A DNA stretch of 64,000 nt, taken from the NCBI RefSeq assembly GCF_964204645.1, contig NC_134031.1, forward strand, positions 5,766,001-5,830,000, in the 5' to 3' direction. A program made the translations under genes and the position numbers. This document shows, one piece after another, positions 1,519-28,379 of this stretch. Numbering within the stretch: position 1 is the stretch's first letter; every line of letters begins with the position of its first letter. Origin of the DNA: Tubulanus polymorphus (Eukaryota; Animalia; Nemertea). The notes under the pieces are model-generated. The model did no database searches and was not told where the DNA came from. It saw only the letters and a list, made by a program, of their open reading frames with translations.

Positions 1519-4500
1519 ATGTCGACTGATGTAGTTGAAGGAACAGCGCTGCATTACGGGGATATCATCGTTATTTGTCTTTACTTTGTTTTCGTCTTAG
1601 GGATTGGACTATGGGTGAGGTTATTTCTTGTGATTTTTGTTCGCTAATAAAAAAAAGTGTAGACTGTAGTCAATGTGACTGTCATGGTAGTACTAGTAGT
1701 AGTGTAGAGACTGTTTCATTCTGCTGTCACCTGCGGTAGCCTGCGTGCAACTGTTAGGCCTATGCTGCATATACCCACTCTCCATAATCTGTGCTTAACA
1801 TCTCTCACCCACCACAGATCGAGAAGCCCTAATTAGTTCTCTGAAATATGATAATGCCTGCCTTGTTGAACTGACTGGGCAAAACGAAATGGCATATGTA
1901 GGCCTACTATCACTATTAAAATAGCCAGACCCGATAACTGATTAAGATAAAAAACCACTACAGTATTCAAATTGAAATATTAAAGGTGAATTTGATTTTT
2001 AATCTATCCGATTTGTATGTTGACGCTGGGTTTTTTCTTAAAACTCAAATAGTAAGTAGGCCTGTATTGTTCATTCTCATTGATCTAGTAAACAATGTAT
2101 TCGGCTGTCAGCAGAACCTTAAATCCCTCAAACTGAATATTGCCTCATTTGTTCCGAGTGTAGACTGTATGGACGTAAAGCACATATAACGTTCCGTATC
2201 AAGACTTTAGATAATATTGTTAATTCTTCTGATGCATGCTTCATCTGTGACATAAACCATGATTATTATTAGGGGCCTGTCAGCATCATCAAATATCGGT
2301 GATTGTGCTAGATTGACTTTGTTAATCATCCTTTTACATATATTTTATCATCACAGGGGCCTGACACAAAAAGTGTTTGACCCCAGTATATCCTGGGATA
2401 TCAGGCCCTTGTTGTTTAATTCTCATTTTAATGTTCCTCGACATTGGTCCTGTCAACTTTTTTGAACTGTCAGACAGATAATGTCTTAGTTAACATTTAG
2501 GACTGATAAAGTTATTTTTGGCTTTGATTTCGAGTTTGTGTTGGAGCCTCGTTCGCTAGTAGTTCAACTTGGCCCTATTATTGACATTGCGCATATCAAT
2601 CATGTTCCGTCAAAACTTCAATGGTTTGGCTCGTACTCGAATGGCCCCGACATACATAGGCCTGTATAGATAAGATGAAAAATATATTGAGAAAAGAAAT
2701 GATAAAATGGATGGTTCATTTTTTTGACGCTGTTATAAGCGTTACACTTATGTTTATATACATAATTGATACCTAGTATGCGTTATTTGAAGCGTTCTGT
2801 GTGAGTCGATGTGCACTACGCCATCAATATCAGCTTTTCAAGATAACAATTACAATTGTGAATTTTGGCCTTGATTTTGCAATTTTAGATATATTTCCTG
2901 ACTTATTTTCTATTCATATCTTCTTAATAATGAATTTTGAGTGGATGTGCCCGACGTTGTCATGTTTGGTACTAACTATTATTAGTCCGTGCTGTTATTT
3001 GGACCAGCGATGTTCCCTGTGGCTAGAAACTTAACTGAGCTTAATAGCATTTCGCCATACAACCACTTTTCCGAGAATTTTCGGTTCAGAGTTGCTTTTA
3101 AGGCTAATCAGTACTTTGGACCAATGACGAAGTGACCACCAAAACTGAATTGTTAACACGGTATTAATCGTTATCGTCGTATGTTTCTCATTTCAGAGCT
3201 CAAGATCAAACCGTGGAAGTGTTGGGGGTTATTTCCTGGCCGGCAGAAACATGCACTGGATCCCGGTAAGAAAGCGAGCCGGCCGACGGTATTCTTATAG
3301 CAGGAAACAAAGAGAACAAACGGCAGGCCTTCCTGGACTTTGTACCACAACAAAACTACGCACCTGGTACTTTCAAGAATTAGCAGTCCAAGGTCTTTTC
3401 TAATGATTAGATTTGAATTAAGTAGTTCATTTCTGTTGAAAGTCTTGTTTATATTTCCCCTTAGTATTCAGATAATGATCCCTGGGTGAAGAATGTAATG
3501 AAAACTGATAAGAAAATTAATTCCCTTATCGCTGTCAAATTCTTTGATTTGAATATTAGACTGTAGATAGTGAAATCTAGTTCATTTCCAATTGCTTAAC
3601 AAATTTAAAGTCAAAACTGAATCTGTGTATCGATTATTGATATTGTGTCTTGCAATGATATCCATTGGTCCTATCATCCTATATTCTTGAGGTATTCCAA
3701 TAAGAGCATTAAAGATCAGGCAAATTTACAGTCTGAACAAGAACTTTATAAAAAGAAATTGAGGAGAGAAAATTCTGGAAAACAGAAATGTTAGCAGAAA
3801 ATTCCGGAATTCTGGGGGTGGGGGGTGGGGGTTACCCATCAAGCAGACAACAGAAAATTCTGGAAAACAGAAATGATGGCAGAAAATTCTGGAAAACAGA
3901 AATATCTAGAAATATTTCCGGAATTGTCAAGTGTCAATTCTGGACCTATCTGGGTAGATCTTGAGTCAACACCTAGACTTTCTCTTATATTCTGGGAATA
4001 CAATACAATACGATCGTTCTATACCTTTTTTGAGATGTGGAAGTAAATTATCGTTTTAGGTGGGCGCCTCTTTGTTTGCCAGTAATATCGGCAGTATACA
4101 CTTCGTAGGTTTGGCAGGATCTGGGGCCGCGGCGGGTTTAGGCATTGCTTCGTATGAACTAAATGTAAGTATTATTCTGGCTAAATGTGATAAAATTCTG
4201 CACACAAGTACACATTTGAAAAAAAAAAACTGAAATTATCATTCAAATTATAATCACACCTATGTATATGATTTGAATGATTATTTTATTTTCAAATTCG
4301 TGCATAGTGGGGCTTTTTGTCATATCACCTATTCTCCACAGGCTATTAGGCACAGACAGACTGCCAAATTATTCTGAATTTTTTTAAGTCCCTTAACATT
4401 TTAAGAATGTGGATTGGCCTATATCTTTTTTCCATTCGGGGAACAAAATTTTGAATTATTGGAAACAACGCGTATTATTTGTTCAGCAACTCGGATAAAC

Positions 4501-7500
4501 GATACACACACTGTACATGAACCCGAAATTGACTTTATTTGGAAAATGGGGAAATCAAACATTTATATTCTGATATATCTTAACAAACAACTGCCGGCTG
4601 TATTTATTGACCGGTAACATCTGGTCACCAGGGGTCGGTGTGACCTATCTTGTATGGGTTTTCTGCAAAGGGTGAAAGAAGATCAGTCTGGTTTTCGATT
4701 GGAAATATTGATTCCGAGAGTAAAATCATTGTTACTGCTGAACTTAATTTGACTGGGACTGTCTCAAATTCTGAAAACAGAGATTCATTTCAGTGTTAAA
4801 TGTTGACATACTGGTATAGCGGATATGTGTCCAAATACGGGTAACATGCGATATTAAACTGTTGCCACTGTCCCATTTAAATAATAGATAATCTCAAATT
4901 AAGGGTCTGTGAATGAAAAATGTGGTTTTCTAGCATGTAGGCCTATCTGTTAGGACTGGCTGTGAGAATATCAGTCACATACATGTCTCAAAGGGTGACT
5001 CCGGGTGGACTTTTGGTTTAAGTATCAGTTAAGAATAACCATCGATAATCAATTAAGAATTATTAGAACATGGAAATTTTCGTTTGTTAGTTAAAGTATT
5101 TTTTGTGGGTTTTTTGAACAGGCTATTTTAGTGGTTCTTGTCTTAGGATGGCTGTTCACACCAGTTTACCTGTCATCAGGGGTAAGTCTTATATTAAACA
5201 TTTGTTTATCTTTTTGTCCGGATAATTTTGAGATTGTCGAACAGACGCCCGGTACTTTCTAAAAGAATCGTTGATAGAATTGACTAAACAAGGAGAAATA
5301 CTTTTTAGCTTCACTGCAACCGAAGGTCAGCGGAAACGCGGTACTAGTGAGCTGTGGCCAAAGGCGTAAATCGATATGGAGCTGTTTTTTGCCCACCCTA
5401 GCGGACTATTGCATTCGCTATTCGTCCACATACTACACACTACAGTGACTGATCTTATCTGATCCTTACCGCATTTAGTAGTATGGATGTTCTATGGGCA
5501 ACTAGTAAATTGCTAACTAGCTGTTTTAAGATTTGATCCCTAAGAGGTACCCTCAGTGGTGTGGGCATAAGATAAACAATAAGTATAATGGAAATTTACA
5601 AAACACAGCAGACCTATGTCAGCTGATATGTTGGGCGATGTAGCCGTAGAGGGCTATTGCATTCAGTTATTTTTGGAAGTTTAAACGACACTTCATTGGA
5701 TTGTGCTGATATTTGGTTTATACAGTTGACTACGCATGTATGGTCTCACTGCATTTATAAACATTTACTAATCTATTTTGCTCCCAATAAATCTCCGGTT
5801 AACCTAATATACATCAGCTGATCAGATAAACACTTACTGTATTACGCGTCATCTCAGCGATATCCATCCTTATGCCTAGGGCACATCGACACTGCGATTG
5901 GAGACAACTAGTTGCAAGGCTATTTTCAGCGCATGAGAGGAACTGGCTGGATACGATCAGTTGCTTGAATGTGTCGATGTGAGCGAGCTTACGATTGGTA
6001 AGCGTCGATCTATCTCCAGTTCCAGCCAGTTGCCCTTGTTCTACTTTTGAGCAACTGGTTGTACTCAATCGCAGTCATATCCGTCGATGTGCGCGCTCTG
6101 GATTTCGACGATCGACACGCGCTATGCAGTTGCTGCAACTGACCGGTTGTAACTAGATTTCGATGTCCGCGGGGTAATCGTTCGGTAGCAACTAGTTGTC
6201 TCCAATCGCAGTGTCGATGTGCGCTAGGCTTTAGATAATATCGAAAATACATATGTATTTTTGATATTATCTTTTATCTGGATATAGCTGGTACCAGCCG
6301 ATACCATAGAAGCGTAGACGACTGTACGCGTGTCTACCCTAGACATTATATGTACAGTAGAATAACTAGGGACTGCCCAAATTTATCTGAATTTAGTAAA
6401 ATCTGAATCATGAATATATTACATGGTTCCACTATTAGTTAAGCTAGATATGATATACAGTTTGCAAAAAGGTTTTTCTTGTGGTGAAAGTCTTGAAAGT
6501 GCTTCTTGAATGACCTTGAGACTATCAGAACCTAAGGACTTGACTATAAGCTCTATCTCAGAACTCTGAACTGCTAAATCATTCCTTTGCATATAAACTT
6601 AAGACATTACTATACAGGATTCCCTAGAAATTCCAAAACAGTCCAAAATTTCATTCTAGAAGCTTAACAAGTAATCCAGAACTGGATACCTGGTTATAAT
6701 AGAATATAGCAGCAATGATCACAGGTTTTCTGCATTATATTTTGATACTTGCAAGCGATAAACCTTTAATGAATGGATTTGTCTGCCTTGGTGTCCGTTA
6801 CGACACAGCTGCTGTCATTACGATATATTGATGGGGAATTATTATATGCATCAACTAAGGTTTTATTTTGATTTTAATGATAAAACCTTTCCGTATTGAT
6901 TCAAATGATTTCCTGCTTCAATGACTTATGTAGAGTCAGTTGAACTTAAGCAGGAAACAGCAAAGGAAATGAAAAAATAACCAATTGATTTAGAAGTGGT
7001 AACCAGTCTCTCGGCGGCTAATACAAATTAGGTTCATTTTTCAATTCAACTCAAGCTTCAGGTCTTTCATCTAACACTTTTGGACAAGCAAAGAAAGGCA
7101 AATAATTTCTATCCATTGGTCGTTTATATCGATTTAATCATTGTCGAAATTGGATCAGCATTCGGGGGCTTGTGGACTTTTAAAGATTGGAAGATGACTG
7201 CATAAAGAATGCTCTATGATTATGGTTTCAAGGTCATTGGTTTCTGTATATGCTCACCAGGGGGCGTTGAATAACGCAATAACATGGTATTTCCTTATTT
7301 ATATAATCAGTACCTGTTTTATGATCGAAGTGAGTTTCAAAGCATTCATTGATAAATGAATTTGTTCACCGGACGACGTTGAATGTTAAAATTTTCCAAT
7401 TGTCGAGCATTTCACCCAGTTGGTATGGTGTCCCTGGACCCCTAGTTCTTTGAGAATTTATGTATATAATATTCGATGCTTAATTCTAGGTGTTTACGAT

Positions 7501-8377
7501 GCCGGAGTATTTGAGAAAACGGTTCGGTGGGCAGAGAATTCGCGTGACGCTGTCGGTCATCTTGCTCCTGATGTACATATTCACTAAAATATCGGTGCGT
7601 ATTCTTTCATTATTCGTTTTTTTTTTTTGCTAACAGAGTGCTCTGCGATGTCGGAAAAAGGCTCAGTTCGTTCAACATCTTTCGTGACATGAACCGAGAG
7701 AACAGCGTTGTCTGAACATAGAACTATAACCAAATGTGAATGCTGACTCCTCAAAAATCAGCTAAGCACCACTGATTATCTTGGGCAGGTTTCGTAGTCA
7801 CGGCTTAGACTAAAGACCAGTCTAAGACCATCGCAGTTCTATAGCTTATCTAACAGCGCAGTTCTATAGCTTATTTAACAGTTAAGACCTCTTTTGGTCT
7901 TAGGTCTCGACTATGGAACCGGCCCCTTGCGTTTTGTTCAGCGTCTTCGTCGTAAGCAATAAACAATAGATTTTCTAGGCTGGTTGCCGGTCTCTATTCT
8001 TAGTAAGTATTTTTCATGATGCGTTAAAAGTCCGAAAACTTCAACAAATCTTGAATGACGCTATCCTCAACGCTCGCAGAGAAAATATCGAAAATATTAC
8101 CGAAAATCTATTGCTTATCATCACCACCGGTGAGGGCGCTGATCGCAGAGGCAAATAGTTATGTCTCGGAGTCGGTATTCCCGTTCGCCTATAGTTCTAT
8201 GGGCTGAATTATAGTTCGATGGCCGTAAGCTGAATACGCTTGCCTTATCCCGACATGCCAGTTTTAAAATCTGAACAGGTTTTCATGTAACGGCAATGCT
8301 GTGCATCCTGCCGAGATCCTTCTGCAAAGGGAGAATGATGTATTGAGAAATACAAGCAGTGGTCAATCACATCTGTC

Positions 8378-8414
<37 letters not shown>

Positions 8415-11400
8415 TGTTATTCATCGTTTCATTCCAATGGTAAATAACCGTGCCGGTTTTTCGGGGTTTTCATTTTCAGGCTGATCTGTACGCCGGCGCC
8501 ATCTTTATCGAACAATCATTACATTGGGATATTTACCTCGCGATTCTACTGTTGTTGGCTATCGCGGCGATTTTCACGATCACCGGCGGTTTGACCGCCG
8601 TAATCTGGACCGATTTCGTGCAGACTATTCTCATGATCGTTGGCGCCGTTTCGTTAATGGTTCTCAGTAAGTTTACGTCCGTTAGATCTATTTCGAGGAG
8701 GGAGGGTTGTTATTCTGATTAATGCAAATAAATGATAATTCGTGTATATCTTGTTCATCGCGGGGACTTGAAAACAGAGCTGAAAAACTGTTCAGGATTT
8801 TCAGTATTTGTTACTCTTTTATAAGGAGAAATACTGATTAGATTTGTTTGATGCATACAGAAATATGAAAGACTTCCCAGAGCCGAACGCTCTAACCACT
8901 CGCCCACTTACCGTATGCCTACCAAGGGTTTTGATTATACCAATTCGATGATTACTCGTGACCGCATTTTTGGTGCAGGAAATTGGGGGAATGACGTTGA
9001 TTTACGCTTATCGATCTATTTTAGTCACTGTTCGTTCTGTAAACATCATTGATAATTCTTCTAAAAAATTGAATACGTAATTCTTGGTGAATATGGATCA
9101 ATTTTGAGATAGTTTTTCCTTCGGACAATATTTTTCCCAATGTCATATCAATGAGTCGGCCCTAGTAACCTTCCAATTCACGTGTCAATGGTAACTTGCG
9201 GTTTCTCAACCCGTAATAAACTTAATGGCAGTTCATCGAATAACTTGTCAGTCCTATCAAAAACACATTGGCCCTATGTACAGTAGACCTCACTTACCTC
9301 AGATGTCGCGATACCATAAAATATTTTCTCAGGCAGGCAATATCCAGACATAAAGTATTGAAGGAACAACGGCGGATCCAGGGCGACTTAAGATACTTGT
9401 GCAAGTCCATCAAATTCTTTTGGGTCCTTATTCATTTCTTCCCAATTTTTACGCTAAAACTTCGCACAAATTTCCGAGGTAAGCACGGTCTACTGAAATT
9501 ATGTATGTATGCTTGTAAAATCGTTCGCATTTGGTGATTTAAATTTGTCGTATCTTGTACGTAGTCGTTCCTGGAGTTTGTAATCAATTTTCTGGGATGT
9601 TTCAAATCACGCTGTAACCTAATTTTACTGTTTGTACGCGAAGAATGAAGGGTATTTATTCGGATCCCTTCGAAAAAAGAACTGGAAATTTCTATCACTA
9701 GAGCATCGCTGTGCTGTATAATGCTGGTTTAGTTTCAATATTAACACCTATGATTCCTCCATCTAAACGGATAATGCTTTCGAAGGTGCTTGAAAACTCC
9801 AGGAATGACTGATCTGTAGGGACCCTGACACTGTAGAAATCATTGCATTCTATCTGAAAGAAGACGTTAATCAGATGTAGGCCTTCTTTCGAGGTTAGGT
9901 TTTCGGCTTCAGAAGACCTATTCATAAATTGAAGCTTTTTTCGAATTGCTTATTATTTTGATGTAATGCAGTTAAACGATCAGAATATTGTATCACTGTG
10001 TATTGATGATCGGGAGTGAATTATATATCTTTTTCTTTTATGTGATCTTGATTTGAAATCTGTTCATAGGACGGTAAAAAAATTGAGTATGAAATATCTA
10101 TGCATGTATATGCTGAATGATGTGAATCCTGGCCAAACAAAGTATGTTAGAATATTCTGAAGAATTATTTACAATACTCAATGACTGTCTTTTGTAGATG
10201 TACATAAAGTATCAGAAAACATGTCTCCAAAACATCTGCTGTTTTGACATAGGCCCTAGCGTATGAAATAGTAAAGGTTTTTTCATGCTATTTATACTCG
10301 GGTTAATTCAGGTATTTTGCTAGGTGATAAAATCGACCCTACCACAAGCAACCTCCTATAGCTGCCTCGCAAATTTTCATATCCAGTTCGATAGTTATCA
10401 ATTCCGCGATTCCATAATTTTTTCCAAACGCTCCAGCTGCTAGTTGAAACTAGAAACGAGAGATTTTATCAAAAAAATTGTGGAATCACGACCAAGCTGC
10501 TGTTCCGCGTTGTCGAGATATAGCGTCAACTGGATGCGCGCGGTTGTAAAAGCGATCGAATGTAACAAAGTATTTCGCCGTTTGAATTTTGCAGGTTTTA
10601 TCGAAGTTGGCGGTTATAAGGGAATGGTCGACAAGTATCCGCGCGCCATGTCGAATTACACGAAACGCACGAACGACACGTGCGGCCGACCTCGCCCGGA
10701 CTACATGAACCTCATACGAGATCCTTTAACCGCCGATTTGCCGTGGCCCGGGATTATCGGTCTTACGATCAATTCCATCTGGTATTGGTGTTCCGATCAG
10801 GTACGACGATTGTTCGGCGCGCTATTCATTCTATTCGTCGGCATGATAGGCCTATACATTTAGTCGTTAAGTTATACATTTGATTAAAAAAATGAATCAA
10901 AACATCAAACGAAATCTACCAATCAAATAAATAACAGGGTCAATCCCTATTTTGAGAAATAAAAGGGAAAAAATATGGAAATATTCATAATACTTACTAG
11001 ATGAATTACCTGATAATTATAATGATAATGATGATAATAATAATAATAATGATGATACAATATTACTCCTGTACCCAGTGGAAAGAATGCTAGTTCCCCA
11101 GCCAGCCTGCCAATATAACACCCAGCCGGTTACATATTCCTTCTTATTTTGAATTTTTGATGTCGTAAATCGTTAAAATAATGTGTTGTATGCATTGAAG
11201 GTACTGTGCATTATTCAAGGGGTACTGTGTCACATGAGTCGATGTGAATTCCTCATCAGTATTGACATTTCGAAATAACAATTACATATACATCTATATC
11301 AAAATTAACATTTATTTGGTTATTGAATAAATTCCATATCTCTTAATTTGCTATTTGATGAATTTCATGAACAATGAATTTTTAAGATGGATGTGCACTA

Positions 11401-14400
11401 CGTCATTATTGGGGGCTAGACTGGTTGATTAATATAGTCTGCTATATGTAAGCAATATATGTTATATTTCAAGGCGGCAATAACATCTAAAGTTAGTTGT
11501 GGGGATTATTAGGCTGGAGTTTTGTCTATCGGTAAGATTAGATTTTGAAAATTTTCAGGTGATCGTCCAGCGAGTGATGGCCGGGAAGAATTTCACGAAT
11601 GCTAAACTCGGCTGTATCCTCTGCGGTTATTTGAAGATTCTGCCGATGTTTTTATTGGTGATGCCAGGAATGATCGCTCGGATCCTTTATCCAGGTATTT
11701 CATTGTCGTCTGTCAAATTATTCCAGAATGACGAGGTGGGATGGAATTGGGCACGTCCGATTCGTGAATTTCTTCGAACTTTTCGTTAAAATCGAATGAA
11801 CTTTTTGATGAAGTTATTATATCACTGGATGTCTTGGAGTACAGTGGATTGCCGAAAAAGAAACGTGAGATCGATTTTATTACGATTCGCATTATTTTAC
11901 AGATACAGTTGCATGTACAGATCCGGATGAATGTTTTAGAATCTGCGGAAGTTACACGGGATGTTCGAACATCGCTTATCCTCTATTAGTGCTGAAGTTG
12001 ATGCCTGCAGGTACGGTGGAGTCGATCAACAAGTCATTTGAACTAATTGTACGACATATTGCCGACGATCGTGTCCAAATATCAGTTTCAGATCATGATA
12101 TTTCGTGTCGAAATTGAAATCCAGGCTCGATTTGCATTCAATAATGCAAGAATCTGAATTCTCGAGCTGATATTTAACGCCATCGTTCTTGCCAGTAAAA
12201 TTTGCGGGCAATGAAACCATCGGTCACAATAACGGGAATGAAGTACAGTTTGTTAACACTGTCAGCCAAAAAGCAACTGTACCATCCCGATTTCCAGGGT
12301 GGAACGGTGTACAAGAACGACCAGCTACGAGATCCATTTTAATGAAGCATTCTGTCCATACTATGATGATAATGTTGTACTAAAGAATTCCACAATAATA
12401 ATGCAAAATCAAGTCTGAAATCTTCCCATGAGCTTACAATTTATTCATTCAACGGTTCGATATTCGCTTTATCCTGATAGTCTATTCCTAAAGATGACTT
12501 TTAAAGGATATAGACAAAACATTAGATGAATTAAGTATTATTTCAAGGTAACATTTCGGACTTTGTCTTGCTTTATTGTTAGTGTGGGCTTCTCTATAAA
12601 CTGCGAGGTATCTCTCAGTAGCAAAAGTGGTGGAACCAGAAGTACCGGAGTTACCTGATATCGGCGTCGAACGTTTTGATAATGTCCTGACTAATTATAT
12701 TAACCTGGCTAATGCATTGCTGTTGTTTATTCACAGGTGCTCGCGGTTTGATGCTAGCTGTGATGATGGCAGCTTTAATGAGCTCGTTGACATCTATATT
12801 CAATTCGAGCAGCACGATCTTCACTCTGGATATATGGACGCGTATTCGTAGGAAAGCGAGTGAAGTTGAACTTATGATTGTTGGAAGGTAAGATTAACAC
12901 CAAGTTTATTGTCTTTACCTGCCAAGCACGACCTCGTCATATGGGCAGAAAATTACCTTCACTTATTTCCTGCCAAATCCATACTGGTACGCTTGAATTG
13001 TTCCTCTAATTCTCTACCTCTAATGTTAGGTGGCGAAGTGGCTGATTGGTGGCCATAATGACTCACCCTATAAGTTTTAAGAACCCAACCAATTTTTGTG
13101 ATATTTGCATTCTATATTATGTCCGACCGATTGCTATGATGGATGTTTTTGAATTAGGGCTATAGACATTTTCATCGGCCGAGGGGTATTGCTAGCGTAG
13201 CTCTAGTCGCTATTACACCGTGTCCGTATTTTAATTGATGGATATGTATTATTTTTTCAGGGTGTTCGTAATTGGTTTGGTGTCTATAAGTATCGCTTGG
13301 ATACCGATCATTAAAGCATCGCAAGGCAGTCAGTTGTTCGTGTATATACAAGAAGTATCTAGTTTCCTCCAGCCTCCGATATGTGCTATTTTCTTACTGG
13401 CTATCTTATGGTCTCGTATCAACGAAAAAGTAAGCGACTTCTTCCTCAATCTACATCTTCTTCGTACCAGAAGTCCTTTATCGCTGGATGTTAGAATGAA
13501 TTTAGTTTCAATTCCGAAATTAGTCATTTGTCTGTCTCGGAAACATGAGAGCCCCGAGAAATCCGAGCTGTCTAATAAAGAACATCCAAGGTCTACAAGT
13601 TTTGCTGCTGAACCAAACTGGAGTTCGAACCAACTGCCCATCGATTAGTCCAACGCCCTCTCCAATAAGTCTAGAGGATGAATGTTTCATTAAAACTTAA
13701 ACGATGTGATCAAGAAGATAAAAGATCTCGTAAAAACATAATCTTATAAAAAGTAGCTTGTGGTATTTCATACCTCCCTTCATACCTAATATATTGACCT
13801 AGATTATATAGCTAATTTGAAGTATGGCACTATCATGAGATGTAAGAGATTTGTTCGACTTTTCTGGATTAATCAGCTATGTCTCGCGTATGTGCATTTT
13901 AATGAGCTCTCGAATCGTTTTGGTTGTTGCGGTCAATGCTGGATTATTGAGATTTGCGTATTTTATGTATTTCAGGGGGCGTTTAGTGGATTGATTGTGG
14001 GACTCCTCGCTGGTCTGATCAGATTCGCCGTTGAATATGCTTACACCATTCCATACTGCACTCAACACTTGCCCGATCCGCGTCCGTCTATTATAACCAA
14101 TTTTCATTATTTGTATTTCGCGATATTTTTGTTCTTGTTGACACTGGCGACGGCTATCATCGTCAGCCTTCTCACGGAGCCTATCGACAAAAAACATGTG
14201 AGTGATCCCTTGAAACTGTCACATAGACCCTTCCCGCTAAGACTGTACATGAACTATCTTTTCTTGAATGTCTGAAGACTCGGAAGAATTATACAGTAAA
14301 TTCTGCCTTGCTGAAGCGTAGATATATAAGCAAGTTGAAGTGTAAGAAATTGAAAAATCTTTTCCAAAAAGATCAAAGCAATCAAAGCAGCAGTTTTCTG

Positions 14401-21008: not shown

Positions 21009-21992
21009 ATGAAGCTTAACGCCACGGTCGTGAAAAAATGCTTCCCTAACGATCGCGTCATTTGGCATCTCGTCTCGGCGACTGTGATTGGACCGATCGG
21101 ATGGTTTGGTCTCGTCACTAACTCGCTAACTTTAGTCGTGCTATATCGACTGCATAAAATGAATAATTCCGCTACTTCGAATTTCGTTTTATTGTTACTG
21201 GCGGTTTTCGACATAGTCTGTTGCGTCGCGATCGTTATCTATAACCATTTAACTTGGGTTTTGAAACTTTCTCGCTATGGAACAGTGGCGCTGTATTTAG
21301 ATTCGGGTTTGGGAGCTCCTGAGCTTAACATAGCGGGCAACCTCCTCTCAAAATGGGGAAGTTATATTCGCAACAGTTTGACCTTATTAGTGACGTTCGA
21401 TCGAGCATTTCATATTTGTTTTCCGCTTAAAGCTAAGAGATATTGGAATCTGAAACATTGTTATGCATTTTCAGCCTTTTGGATTTTCGTATGGACTGGA
21501 GTACAGTCATATCGTTCTCTGAACCGACGCGTCGGGTTATCAAAATTAACATGCACTTACGGCCTCACTGTCTTCGATGGCAAATCGGTTTACGATCCCC
21601 ACAAATATTCGTATTTGTTAGAAAGTATTTTCTCCACATATGTGCCATTCGCGCTTGTACCTCTACTGAATTTGGTCATGATAATCAAATTACAACTTCA
21701 CGCTAAAAATAGGAACCAACTGACCAGTACAGACACTAAACAAACGAAACAAGATGGGACAGCGCACAGAATGGTATTTGTGGCATCCAGTATATTTATG
21801 GTGTCAGTTTCCCCTGATATGTTTTTCAATGTTTTAAGACTCTATTTACCATGGTCTGATATCTGGTGGGTTTTACTTTTGAATGACGTTTTTCAAGCCC
21901 TGAATTCGGCGGTAAACGGTATATTTTACTACGTGTACAGCAAAAACTTTAAAGAACAAATGAACTCGTTGTTACGCCGTGGACGATCGTAG
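21009..21992 (+). CDS. Intronless class A (rhodopsin-like) GPCR, peptide/FMRFamide-receptor-like orphan, 327 aa
   Basis: Seven hydrophobic segments: TM1 GLVTN, TM2 LAVFD, TM3 TFDRAFHICFP (DRY variant), TM5 YVPF..N, TM7 LNSAVNGIFY and helix 8 SKNFKEQ. Confidence 0.88.
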   Translation: MKLNATVVKKCFPNDRVIWHLVSATVIGPIGWFGLVTNSLTLVVLYRLHKMNNSATSNFVLLLLAVFDIVCCVAIVIYNHLTWVLKLSRYGTVALYLDSGLGAPELNIAGNLLSKWGSYIRNSLTLLVTFDRAFHICFPLKAKRYWNLKHCYAFSAFWIFVWTGVQSYRSLNRRVGLSKLTCTYGLTVFDGKSVYDPHKYSYLLESIFSTYVPFALVPLLNLVMIIKLQLHAKNRNQLTSTDTKQTKQDGTAHRMVFVASSIFMVSVSPDMFFNVLRLYLPWSDIWWVLLLNDVFQALNSAVNGIFYYVYSKNFKEQMNSLLRRGRS

Positions 21993-26179: not shown

Positions 26180-26307
26180 TTCTTATTGTTATATTAATGT
26201 AAAATGTTTATGTTTTGTAAATACTACTTGTAAATATCACTCTGTACATCTCGACCCGAAAGGGTGTAATCAGTATAATAAAGAGTTTATTGAATTGAAT
26301 TGAATTG
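26180..26307 (+). mobile_element. Probable LINE 3' tail ending in (ATTGA)n
   Basis: Short hairpin (ACCCGAAAGGGT), then AATAAA, then ATTGA repeats. Confidence 0.45.
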
Positions 26308-26564
26308 TTTGAAATGAACATATGATTACGGAAAGAAAAGAACATACTGAGTGCAACAGTCTATCACAAATATGAATTAAAGATGAGGTTGATTAAAGTT
26401 TCGATTTTGTATCCGCGTCAATATTGAACATTGAATTAATCATTTGATTATTCATCACTCTCCATAGCCGTATATAATGAATTTGATGATACATATAATA
26501 TCCGGTCGATTGTCTGCCACATGTTCTGAATTTATTCCCCGTGCATAAACGCTCCCTCAGACTA

Positions 26565-26613
26565 TGACGTCAATAACACCTATAAAAGCGGAGCGATAGA
26601 TTTCAGTGAGTCA
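26565..26613 (+). promoter_or_regulatory. Core promoter: full CRE, TATA box, initiator and AP-1 site
   Basis: TGACGTCA at 26565-26572, TATAAAAG at 26581-26588, TCAGT (Inr-like) at about 26603-26607, TGAGTCA at 26607-26613. Confidence 0.8.
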
Positions 26614-26667
26614 TTAAACCAGTACTCTGTTAATACGCATAGGATAGTATATAACCGCCGTATATTC

Positions 26668-27316
26668 ATGCTATATCTGGTGAGTATGTGAACAATATAC
26701 CAAACGTATGAATTGGATTTTTAGGAAATTAATTTACCAATCCATATATCTCTTATCTTTTAATCTTTAATGATATAAGAAAGTTGTAATTTACTGATCC
26801 TTGGGCGTAGCTTCTGTGAGTAAATAAATTGACATTCTGTTAACGGCTGCGGGTGTGTCGGATCCCTATTCCTATTCATTTCATTGTTGTTGTAGGTGAG
26901 AGGGAAAGGGTATACGTGAAACGTTAGTACCATGAGGAATGATTATGTTATCATTTTTTTTCTATCAGGGGATGCCGTACGGATTGTACACAATTCCACC
27001 ACCTACCCGTGGTCAGTTAGCAGACATAGTGACCAATCGACCAGCTACCAGGCGCCGAAACGCAATGTCGAACATTTTCGAGAATCTGGCCACGAGTCAA
27101 ACGGAGTTCCTGGCCCGGCATAACGAGAACCGTTTGGAACCAGAACACGAAGACGACGACAGGAACGAATTGTTATTATCAACCGAACGATCGCGATTGC
27201 GTAATAGGCGGAATGGATTGAGCGAGATAGTTTTACCAGATGATTTTGATGCGGTCAGATGTCAAAGATACGGAAAACGCCGTAATGCGATAACAGACGA
27301 TGACCTTGATTCTTGA
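26668..27316 (+). CDS. Small PKI-like protein (119 aa) with three PKA pseudosubstrate motifs
   Basis: Exon 26668-26679 (MLYL, donor GTGAGT) joins in phase 0 to 26969-27316 (acceptor TTTTTTTTCTATCAG). Motifs RRRNAM (27050-27067), RRNGL (27206-27220) and KRRNAI (27275-27292). Upstream TATA box; ATTTA-rich tract near 27591; AATAAA at 27698. Confidence 0.75.
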
Positions 27317-28379
27317 GACTTTATACGTCAAAATCCGACAACCGCAGTTTGTCATTTTAGACTCGGTAAACTGTCAGCCAAAAGGAATTCTCTATAATTT
27401 ACGTTCAGTGAAAACAATAAGTTGGTCGACTTGGTAAACAACCCCCCGTGTCGCTTGGATTTTTATACCCATGTTTATATACCAGACGGAGCATATTTAA
27501 AACCGGGAAAAAAGTAATTTACTTCGTAATAAAAACGTCAAGAAACTTTTACAGAGTATTCTTTAATTCACCAAAACCATGTGTCAAAGTATTTATTTAT
27601 ATATTTTACATGCCACTTAACGCTTCTATATTTTGATTGAAATCAATTGTGAATATTCACGTGTTTAAAAACTAATTTTCGTAAGCTATTTTGTGTTAAT
27701 AAAAAATGTTCTATAAGAATCTCTATCGTGTATAGCATTGTTGGATCGTCACCGCAGGAGGAGCTGATCCAGGACCAATTTTCCATTGTGTATTCCGGAT
27801 TTTATAAGGGCACCCTTTTTACGGCCAATGAATATTTAACAAGTCCCCACGCTTTATATTAGACCCCCACATAACACTTGATAAAACGTCGTATATGCCG
27901 TTATTCAAGATGTTACCAGCAGACATCTCTTTTGAAATTGTTTATTGATAGGGTATGACAGAAATTCGTAAGGGCACTGTTTCAATCACCACTATATTCC
28001 GGAATGCATGAGTACGGTCTGCATCCGCGCTAGTCTACCTGGGATCCCTTTTGGAAAACTTCACTTAGGTTTTGTTGACTCGTAGGAAAATTCTACTAAG
28101 GTTAAGTTTTTTCTGGAATATCTTTTAGTTGAAAAGTATACTAAAAGTCTGTCTCAGTCCAGTTTGCCGCGGCATATCAAAGCTTTTCTATCATAACATC
28201 GCCTGATTCCCGTGGTTACTGCATGGTAACTGCGCACTCCACAGCATGACGTCTGGCCACTGTATCCAAGAGTGCGTATATAGGTTTCTGACTGACCAGA
28301 GCCTTCATAGGCAGTCTTCGAAAAGTTATAAAAATGTTGTCATTCTATTCTTGCGAATCTATGTTTTTCATGTTTTTAT

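Follow-up and report, generated by a model that had tools for sequence, protein, structure and literature searches.

The window analysed here, a 64,000-nucleotide (nt) stretch of the genome of the palaeonemertean Tubulanus polymorphus (G000:C7:5766001-5830000; contig NC_134031.1 of assembly GCF_964204645.1), contains a compact two-exon gene for a protein of 119 amino acids (aa) with three motifs of the form RRN[A/G][M/L/I]. A reading made from the DNA letters alone (hereafter, the sequence-only reading) had proposed that this gene encodes an inhibitor of cyclic AMP (cAMP)-dependent protein kinase (PKA) that is itself induced by cAMP. Our analysis supports the interpretation in part: the gene is spliced and expressed, its motifs are non-random and conserved in a paralogue, and the promoter elements are present. 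Judged by sequence comparison, the gene appears to belong to a small, divergent family related to the PKA inhibitor PKI, whose Tubulanus members carry two and three such motifs (two-headed and three-headed, respectively). Exon coordinates were as previously described, and the product is identical to NCBI XP_074655015.1, which is named 'uncharacterized protein LOC141908742' (Tubulanus polymorphus). This database record (P0001) is the full-length query and was used for the full-length searches, and exon 2 was searched separately.

Contigs of public runs were aligned to positions 26300-27900 of the window. The predicted 26679/26969 splice junction was found in joined contigs from two separate studies (runs X2 and X4). 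The joined contig of run X2 has a depth of ~4400, and the exon 2 contigs of the same run reach 4000-13000, compared to 20-140 for contigs of the intron and upstream region; run X4 (2014) contains one 429-nt contig that corresponds to 26629-26678 joined to 26968-27346. Although contig depth measures expression poorly, the exon-to-intron ratio within one run shows that the spliced RNA lies far above background. Transcript coverage begins by 26629, in agreement with a start ~30 bp after the TATA box, and transcription probably starts near 26612. The stretch 26590-26667 contains no ATG upstream of the first one at 26668, which lies in a poorer context than another in-frame ATG at 26972. At the other end, contigs extend to ~27660-27700, in agreement with the AATAAA at 27698. 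The locus is single-copy at both the DNA and the protein level, and the GC content of the coding sequence is 48.6% compared to 31-36% in the intron, untranslated regions (UTRs), and flanks. In run X4, the transcript sequence differs from the window at two positions in ~360 nt of coding sequence (one synonymous, one Ala22Glu), compared to five differences and an indel in 343 nt of 3' UTR. The coding alleles Ala22 and Glu22 are also both present in run X2, where they occur at position 27021 at near-equal contig depth.

All three motifs are present as described: RRNAM at residues 33-37, RRNGL at residues 84-88, and RRNAI at residues 108-112, the second and third being only 24 residues apart. When the protein was shuffled 10^6 times with its composition preserved, three copies of RRN[AG][ILMV] never occurred and two copies occurred five times. 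Across all 64 kb, translation in six frames gives no match to this pattern beyond the gene's own three. The motifs are encoded by different codons (CGC CGA AAC GCA ATG, AGG CGG AAT GGA TTG, and CGC CGT AAT GCG ATA), no DNA repeat joins them, and no similarity was found among their flanks. Based on these three properties, they behave like a selectively maintained short linear motif and not like a recent tandem duplication. The protein was previously described as low-complexity and probably disordered; low confidence in both structure predictions is consistent with disorder but says little beyond that. The ESM Atlas model has a predicted local distance difference test score (pLDDT) of 0.42, and feature and structure searches with it returned only noise (scores of 0.78 or below). 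AlphaFold2 (AF2), run on the single sequence, gave a mean pLDDT of 60.7 and placed short helices at residues 18-26, 67-85, and 99-106, such that every motif is directly preceded by one.

Table 1. Features of the three-motif gene (positions in the window).
Feature	Position	Strand	Remarks
Perfect palindromic cAMP response element (CRE), TGACGTCA	26565-26572		Unchanged in the X2 allele with about a dozen nearby differences
TATA box, TATAAAAG	26581-26588	+	A>G at 26586 in one X2 allele
Exon 1, transcript-covered part	26629-26679	+	X4 contig begins at 26629; X2 depth climbs within 26624-26677
Exon 1 coding stub	26668-26679	+	ATG at 26668-26670; 12 nt, encodes MLYL
Intron	26680-26968	+	289 nt, GT..AG; joined form in runs X2 and X4
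Exon 2 coding part	26969-27316	+	115 codons and TGA; stop at 27314-27316
Module A	27005-27091	+	Short predicted helix (residues 18-26), then RRRNAMSNIFENL; core RRNAM at 27053-27067
Motif 2, RRNGL	27206-27220	+	SEIVLP directly after
Motif 3, RRNAI	27278-27292	+	DAVR..RYGK directly before
3' UTR	27317-27725	+	Five ATTTA; AATAAA at 27528 and 27698

When the genome was scanned with a profile of module A (the first motif and its flanks), the real matches were limited to this gene and one other, a 205-aa open reading frame (ORF) on another chromosome (L024:5722-6339; G000:C8:10177121-10177738, + strand). This paralogue is nested within EMC2 and has the same orientation; the intron that contains it spans ~19.5 kb, between EMC2 exons (PF22890) at C8:10161321-10161410 and C8:10180959-10181117. 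It has two heads, RRNAM near the N-terminus (EINVNRFTEPRRRRNAMANIFSGL) and RRNGL near the C-terminus (DNDAVRDRTRFHRRRNGLANILDP), which are separated by a Ser/Pro-rich repeat. BLASTP aligned the paralogue to P0001 at E 1e-4, with 12/21 identities across RRRNAMSNIFENLATSQTEFL. Similarity outside the five-residue core was evaluated by keeping the core fixed and shuffling the flanks alone: module A matched the paralogue at p 0.0002, and the second head of the paralogue matched motif 3 (p 0.004; common DAVR..R[F/Y]x[R/K]RRN[G/A][L/I]) as well as motif 2 (p 0.013; RRNGLANILDP in the paralogue, common RRNGL[S/A][E/N]I[V/L]xP). The linkers of the two genes are unrelated and very different in length, and this combination of conserved short modules with free-running linkers is typical of functional disordered proteins. 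The paralogue may be unannotated, because its exact protein is absent from the protein collection. Another match to the module A profile, a 50-aa ORF containing RRRNSTSN (L027), was set aside as due to chance.

A scan of JGI metagenomes with module A identified a relative outside of the Tubulanus genome, an 83-aa ORF (MAVIVTGRLCRRNAMANIF) of a eukaryote at L028:3001-3252 on Ga0209681_1005064, which is found also on Ga0209788_1043075 (further copies in L029-L033). Records of the identical protein come from three JGI samples, an assembly in ENA, and the SRA run SRR5420669. A single head was found, with 1.9 kb of downstream sequence available. This relative and PKI can be aligned gap-free (I-V-T-G-R-L-C-R-R-N-A-M-A-N-I-F compared to I-A-S-G-R-T-G-R-R-N-A-M-P-D-I-L), i.e., the relative keeps the PKI register I..GR..RRNAM, with Gly-Arg at P-7/P-6 and Ile at P-10 (positions are counted from the Ala/Gly at P0). 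The flank shuffle of the relative against the lophotrochozoan PKI profile gave p 0.004. In a three-way alignment, IVTNR of the nemertean gene corresponds to IVTGR of the relative and is followed by a two-residue insertion before the core; this insertion explains why the arginine of motif 1 is out of register (P-8 instead of P-6). Taken together, the six known copies of the motif (three in this gene, two in the paralogue on C8, and one in the metagenome relative) all have Ala or Gly at P0 and never Ser or Thr. All six follow the pseudosubstrate rule of the PKA catalytic subunit, with Arg at P-3 and P-2, a non-phosphorylatable P0, and an aliphatic P+1.

The three-motif gene is not the PKI orthologue of the worm. 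That gene lies on a different chromosome (G000:C8:16055950-16056090; L002:1492-1645), contains VDEFITSGRTGRRNAMPNVLDENHL, and matches the Pfam PKI profile with 41.5 bits in the genome scan and 43.4 bits for the exon, and we rejected orthology for the three-motif gene, which did not reach the Pfam cut-off. The canonical protein shares 50-60% of its residues with mollusc proteins annotated as 'cAMP-dependent protein kinase inhibitor alpha-like', and through the mollusc alignment solved PKI-alpha chains were matched at E 1e-8. No further PKI-type motif occurs within 10 kb of the canonical gene. Beyond the splice donor, the L002 ORF enters a Pro/Ser/Leu-rich repeat; this part represents read-through of the intron and is not protein. 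A second genomic match to the PKI profile (L003, DRTARRNAKPDF) lies in an exon that also matches APC1_C and was taken as chance. There, KFLCTDRTARRNAKPDF precedes the match to the APC1 C-terminal domain (L003:1357-1668, minus strand; G000:C1, about 3348337-3348405) and has Phe P-11 and Arg P-6 exactly in the PKI register, whereas its P+1 residue is Lys; this is probably a chance occurrence, albeit a curious one in a subunit of the anaphase-promoting complex.

Descent of the family of the three-motif gene from PKI appears probable but is not proven. Comparison with a lophotrochozoan PKI alignment using hhalign gave E 4e-4 for the single sequence, 6e-5 for two sequences, and 2.8e-5 (74% probability, 18 columns) for three, the match improving with each relative added. 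For motif 1, the flank shuffle with the core fixed gave p 0.03-0.08 against PKI. Asn at P-1 is invariant in PKI and is shared by the motifs of this gene, and the pattern x-[N/D/E]-[I/V]-[L/F/V] after P+1 is also common to both (RRNAMPNVL in the worm's PKI, RRNAMPDIL in the lophotrochozoan consensus). The comparison of the whole protein with the worm's own PKI was not significant, either with BLASTP or with semi-global alignment. In a word-indexed search of 5.8 billion proteins, P0001 returned only the query itself. Two other candidates were discarded: the protein record P0002, which is a translated tandem repeat, and a reading of RRRNAMSNIFENL as part of a basic helix-loop-helix or bZIP domain, for which there was no Pfam match at E up to 10 and the register is unfit.

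The promoter elements of the sequence-only reading were recovered exactly, with a palindromic CRE located 8 bp upstream of a TATA box (Table 1). CRE sites near a TATA box mark a strongly inducible class of CREB targets (PMC5740062), and this gene has what defines such a CRE/TATA promoter (PMC5740062), namely the CRE, the TATA box, and transcript contigs that begin by 26629. The octamer alone is not rare (two in the window compared to one expected). Genome-wide, TGACGTCA is followed by TATAAAA within 4-14 bp in 68 cases compared to 39 in a reversed control, and most of these belong to two repeat families. What gives the CRE weight is therefore its location, exactly where the transcript of an expressed gene begins, because both the octamer and, outside the repeats, the CRE-TATA pair occur at about chance frequency. 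Upstream of the paralogue, the CRE-like TGACGTAG (L024:5272-5279) lies 44 bp before the same TATAAAAG (5323-5330), the surrounding DNA being otherwise unalignable, and the metagenome relative has TGACGGACGTCG ~90 bp before CATAAAAG. Control of the gene by CREB/ATF factors is thus plausible. An AP-1 site had also been noted, and TGAGTCA is indeed present at 26607-26613 (+ strand) around the predicted start; with five TGA[CG]TCA in the window this element is not enriched, and it has no functional support. The 3' UTR had been called ATTTA-rich, and its five copies (two of which overlap in TATTTATTTAT at 27590-27600) represent a modest enrichment over the 1.9 expected (p 0.04).

In run X2, a divergent natural allele of this region (26306-26680) shows 12 substitutions and two length changes: 11 nt are inserted after 26615, and 2 nt are deleted at 26647. 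This allele retains both the CRE and the AP-1-like site, and the substitution in the TATA box changes it to TATAGAAG. Of the two repeat families with CRE-TATA pairs, one (TGACGTCACACTGTCAGTATAAAA) has at least 30 copies in the genome. The other (TGACGTCACACTGCGCGGAATCTATAAAA) often occurs as same-strand pairs ~7.58 kb apart (e.g., C2:20043952/20051530, C3:5898320/5905898, and C6:17508071/17515650), which look like the two long terminal repeats of a retroelement with a CRE/TATA promoter.

We infer from these data that PKA may be the partner of this protein, that the protein would inhibit it through several sites, and that cAMP would induce the gene. The gene would encode a small, largely disordered cytosolic protein with three PKA-type decoy sites, each of which would occupy the substrate groove of the free catalytic subunit. 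The arginines at P-3 and P-2 would sit in acidic pockets, Ala or Gly would replace the phospho-acceptor, and the aliphatic P+1 residue would lie in the P+1 loop. Arg at P-3/P-2, a non-phosphorylatable P0, and a hydrophobic P+1 are the hallmarks of such decoys (10.1101/2021.07.05.451193; PMC6514771; PMC4674680). Because the high-affinity helix and Arg P-6 (and Phe P-11) of PKI are displaced or absent, each head would probably bind with moderate affinity, much more weakly than PKI. A weak motif can still be physiologically active, as in SMO (Smoothened), whose PKI motif has a KD of 823 nM compared to 1.1 nM for PKI(5-24) (10.1101/2021.07.05.451193), and the natural kinase inhibitor Inka1 has a duplicated decoy (iBox and iBox-C; PMC4674680). 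Potency might instead come from the presence of several heads (rebinding or avidity) together with high expression, the extra heads allowing several kinases to be bound at once or merely faster rebinding. CREB/ATF factors acting through the CRE-TATA arrangement would then close a feedback loop from PKA through CREB to the inhibitor. For a divergent, multi-headed PKI-related inhibitor of the PKA catalytic subunit we put the chances at about even, leaning slightly toward it; the complete cAMP feedback loop appears rather doubtful. Equally tentative is the broader possibility of a second, hitherto unrecognised PKI branch in nemerteans, and perhaps in other spiralians, in which two or three moderate heads on one disordered chain would have replaced the single high-affinity head and would form a natural multivalent 'sponge' for the free catalytic subunit, driven by a CRE/TATA promoter such that PKA would induce its own buffer.

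Several results weigh against inhibition of PKA in a feedback loop. The Pfam PKI profile (PF02827) matches the exon 2 product at residues 27-50 with only 12.9 bits (E 0.14; gathering cut-off 25), and isolated motif segments gave no match to it. Motifs 2 and 3 have no PKI-like flanks. Searches of PDB sequences with the protein and with motif 1 matched no PKI chain. As the sequence-only reading had already noted, the PKI determinants Arg P-6 and Phe P-11 have no counterpart in register: in motif 1, Arg occupies P-8 and Val P-11, and in motif 3, Arg occupies P-7 and Tyr P-6. A loose (and crude) pattern for nuclear export signals (NES) finds none in this protein and one in the Tubulanus PKI exon. 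The AF2 prediction places motif 1 within a long low-confidence helix (residues 30-57), whereas a decoy must bind in extended form. An exhaustive phmmer search of 1.84 billion representatives returned only the query and P0002 and thus no annotated homologue in another animal; conservation outside Tubulanus rests on the one relative from metagenome contigs. With respect to the promoter, tight CRE-TATA pairs occur at about chance frequency once the repeat families are set aside, and a natural X2 allele alters the TATA box. No ATTTA occurs downstream of the stop codon of the paralogue, which weakens the part of the proposal that concerns instability of an immediate-early transcript.

Some of these results would fit a different partner. 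Candidates are basophilic kinases other than PKA (PKG, PRKX, or one of the PKC type) and proteins outside the kinases that would hold the longer conserved stretch RRRNAMxNIFxxL as a helix; the likeness to PKI would then be convergent. Conservation of module A reaches ~P+15, which is beyond the needs of the PKA groove, the same segment is modelled as helical, and the PKI profile falls short of its threshold; in addition, the autoinhibitory sites of PKG are also of the x-[A/G]-I-S type. However, Ala or Gly at P0 in every copy, together with Arg-Arg and Asn at P-1, is the signature of PKI, the metagenome relative is in the PKI register including Gly-Arg at P-7/P-6, and PKI itself keeps the same pattern from P+3 to P+5. 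We consider a different partner rather unlikely, yet worth keeping in mind beside the PKA decoy.

Far less probable is a reading of the motifs as sites of phosphorylation or docking, in which the protein would be a substrate rather than an inhibitor and the acceptor would lie two residues after the Ala/Gly. Residue P+2 is Ser, Ser, and Thr in the three motifs of this gene (RRNAMS, RRNGLS, and RRNAIT), which has a chance of ~0.002 given 14 Ser/Thr per 119 residues, and Ser is also found at this position in the type I regulatory subunit of PKA from the same worm. The exon of this subunit was located with a degenerate DNA pattern (L018:1459-1578; KKRIRRGAVSAEVYTEEDAASYVKKV), and its inhibitor site (RRGAVSAEVYTEEDAASYVKKV; G000:C4:6683202-6683225) reads RRGAVS, so Ala/Gly at P0 followed by a small P+2 is native to the type I regulatory class as well. 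In the other three copies of the motif, two from the paralogue and one from the metagenome relative, P+2 is however Ala (RRNAMA and RRNGLA), hence the conserved function cannot need a hydroxyl at P+2. We also know of no basophilic kinase with a consensus of Arg at -5/-4 and Asn at -3. Just as improbable is a young, lineage-restricted gene without selected function and with accidental motifs and promoter elements: the lack of an annotated homologue in other animals and the disordered, low-complexity protein would suit it, but the recurrence of the motif (0 in 10^6 shuffles), modules that were kept between paralogues while the linkers diverged beyond recognition, the relative in another organism, the abundant spliced RNA, the coding GC content above that of the flanks, and the smaller number of coding than 3' UTR differences in X4 all speak against it.

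Elsewhere in the window, a single-exon ORF of 327 aa (21009-21992, + strand), 4.6 kb upstream of the gene, matches the serpentine G-protein-coupled receptor family Srw (38 bits).

To our knowledge, all described PKIs have one decoy site and reach nanomolar affinity through a helix and Arg P-6. If the proposed function is correct, potency would be reached here by another route, with two or three weaker heads in one natural inhibitor that relies on avidity and abundance. Such an inhibitor would be relevant to the buffering of the free catalytic subunit, a question under active study in the field of PKA signalling, and its natural sequences could serve in PKA sensors or inhibitors that can be tuned. 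With a functional CRE, the gene would form a compact and self-contained feedback unit whose target is the kinase itself instead of cAMP or CREB. The gene also illustrates that proteins built on short motifs in this way are missed by Pfam and by whole-protein searches and are recovered only when motifs are compared.

The protein resembles PKI in being small and disordered, in its R-R-N-A-[M/I] core, in the downstream x-[N/D]-[I/V]-[L/F], and in a short predicted helix before the first head. It differs from PKI in having three heads instead of one, a separate locus and promoter, the equivalent of PKI Arg15 at P-8, no Phe at P-11, and no NES-like stretch found. With the type I regulatory subunits of PKA, it shares RR-x-[A/G]-aliphatic-Ser with a small P+2 (RRNAMS and RRNGLS), whereas P-1 is Asn and not Gly, and dimerisation and cyclic-nucleotide-binding domains are absent; its release by cAMP is therefore impossible. 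The tail of Smoothened is likewise a decoy without the full PKI determinants; it is ~800-fold weaker than PKI(5-24) and works through proximity or avidity. It differs in having a single motif in the tail of a membrane receptor regulated by GRK phosphorylation, in contrast to several motifs in a free, soluble small protein. Inka1 offers a parallel in the duplication of a substrate-like inhibitory box with little conservation outside the boxes, although its kinase is PAK4, its P0 is Pro, and the sequences are unrelated. With respect to regulation, ICER, PDE4D, and SIK1 are cAMP-inducible feedback genes with CRE/TATA promoters. The three-motif gene resembles this group in having a full CRE a few bp from the TATA box at its start and a product that would damp the pathway, but in contrast to these genes its product would act on the kinase itself and not on CREB, cAMP, or CRTC.

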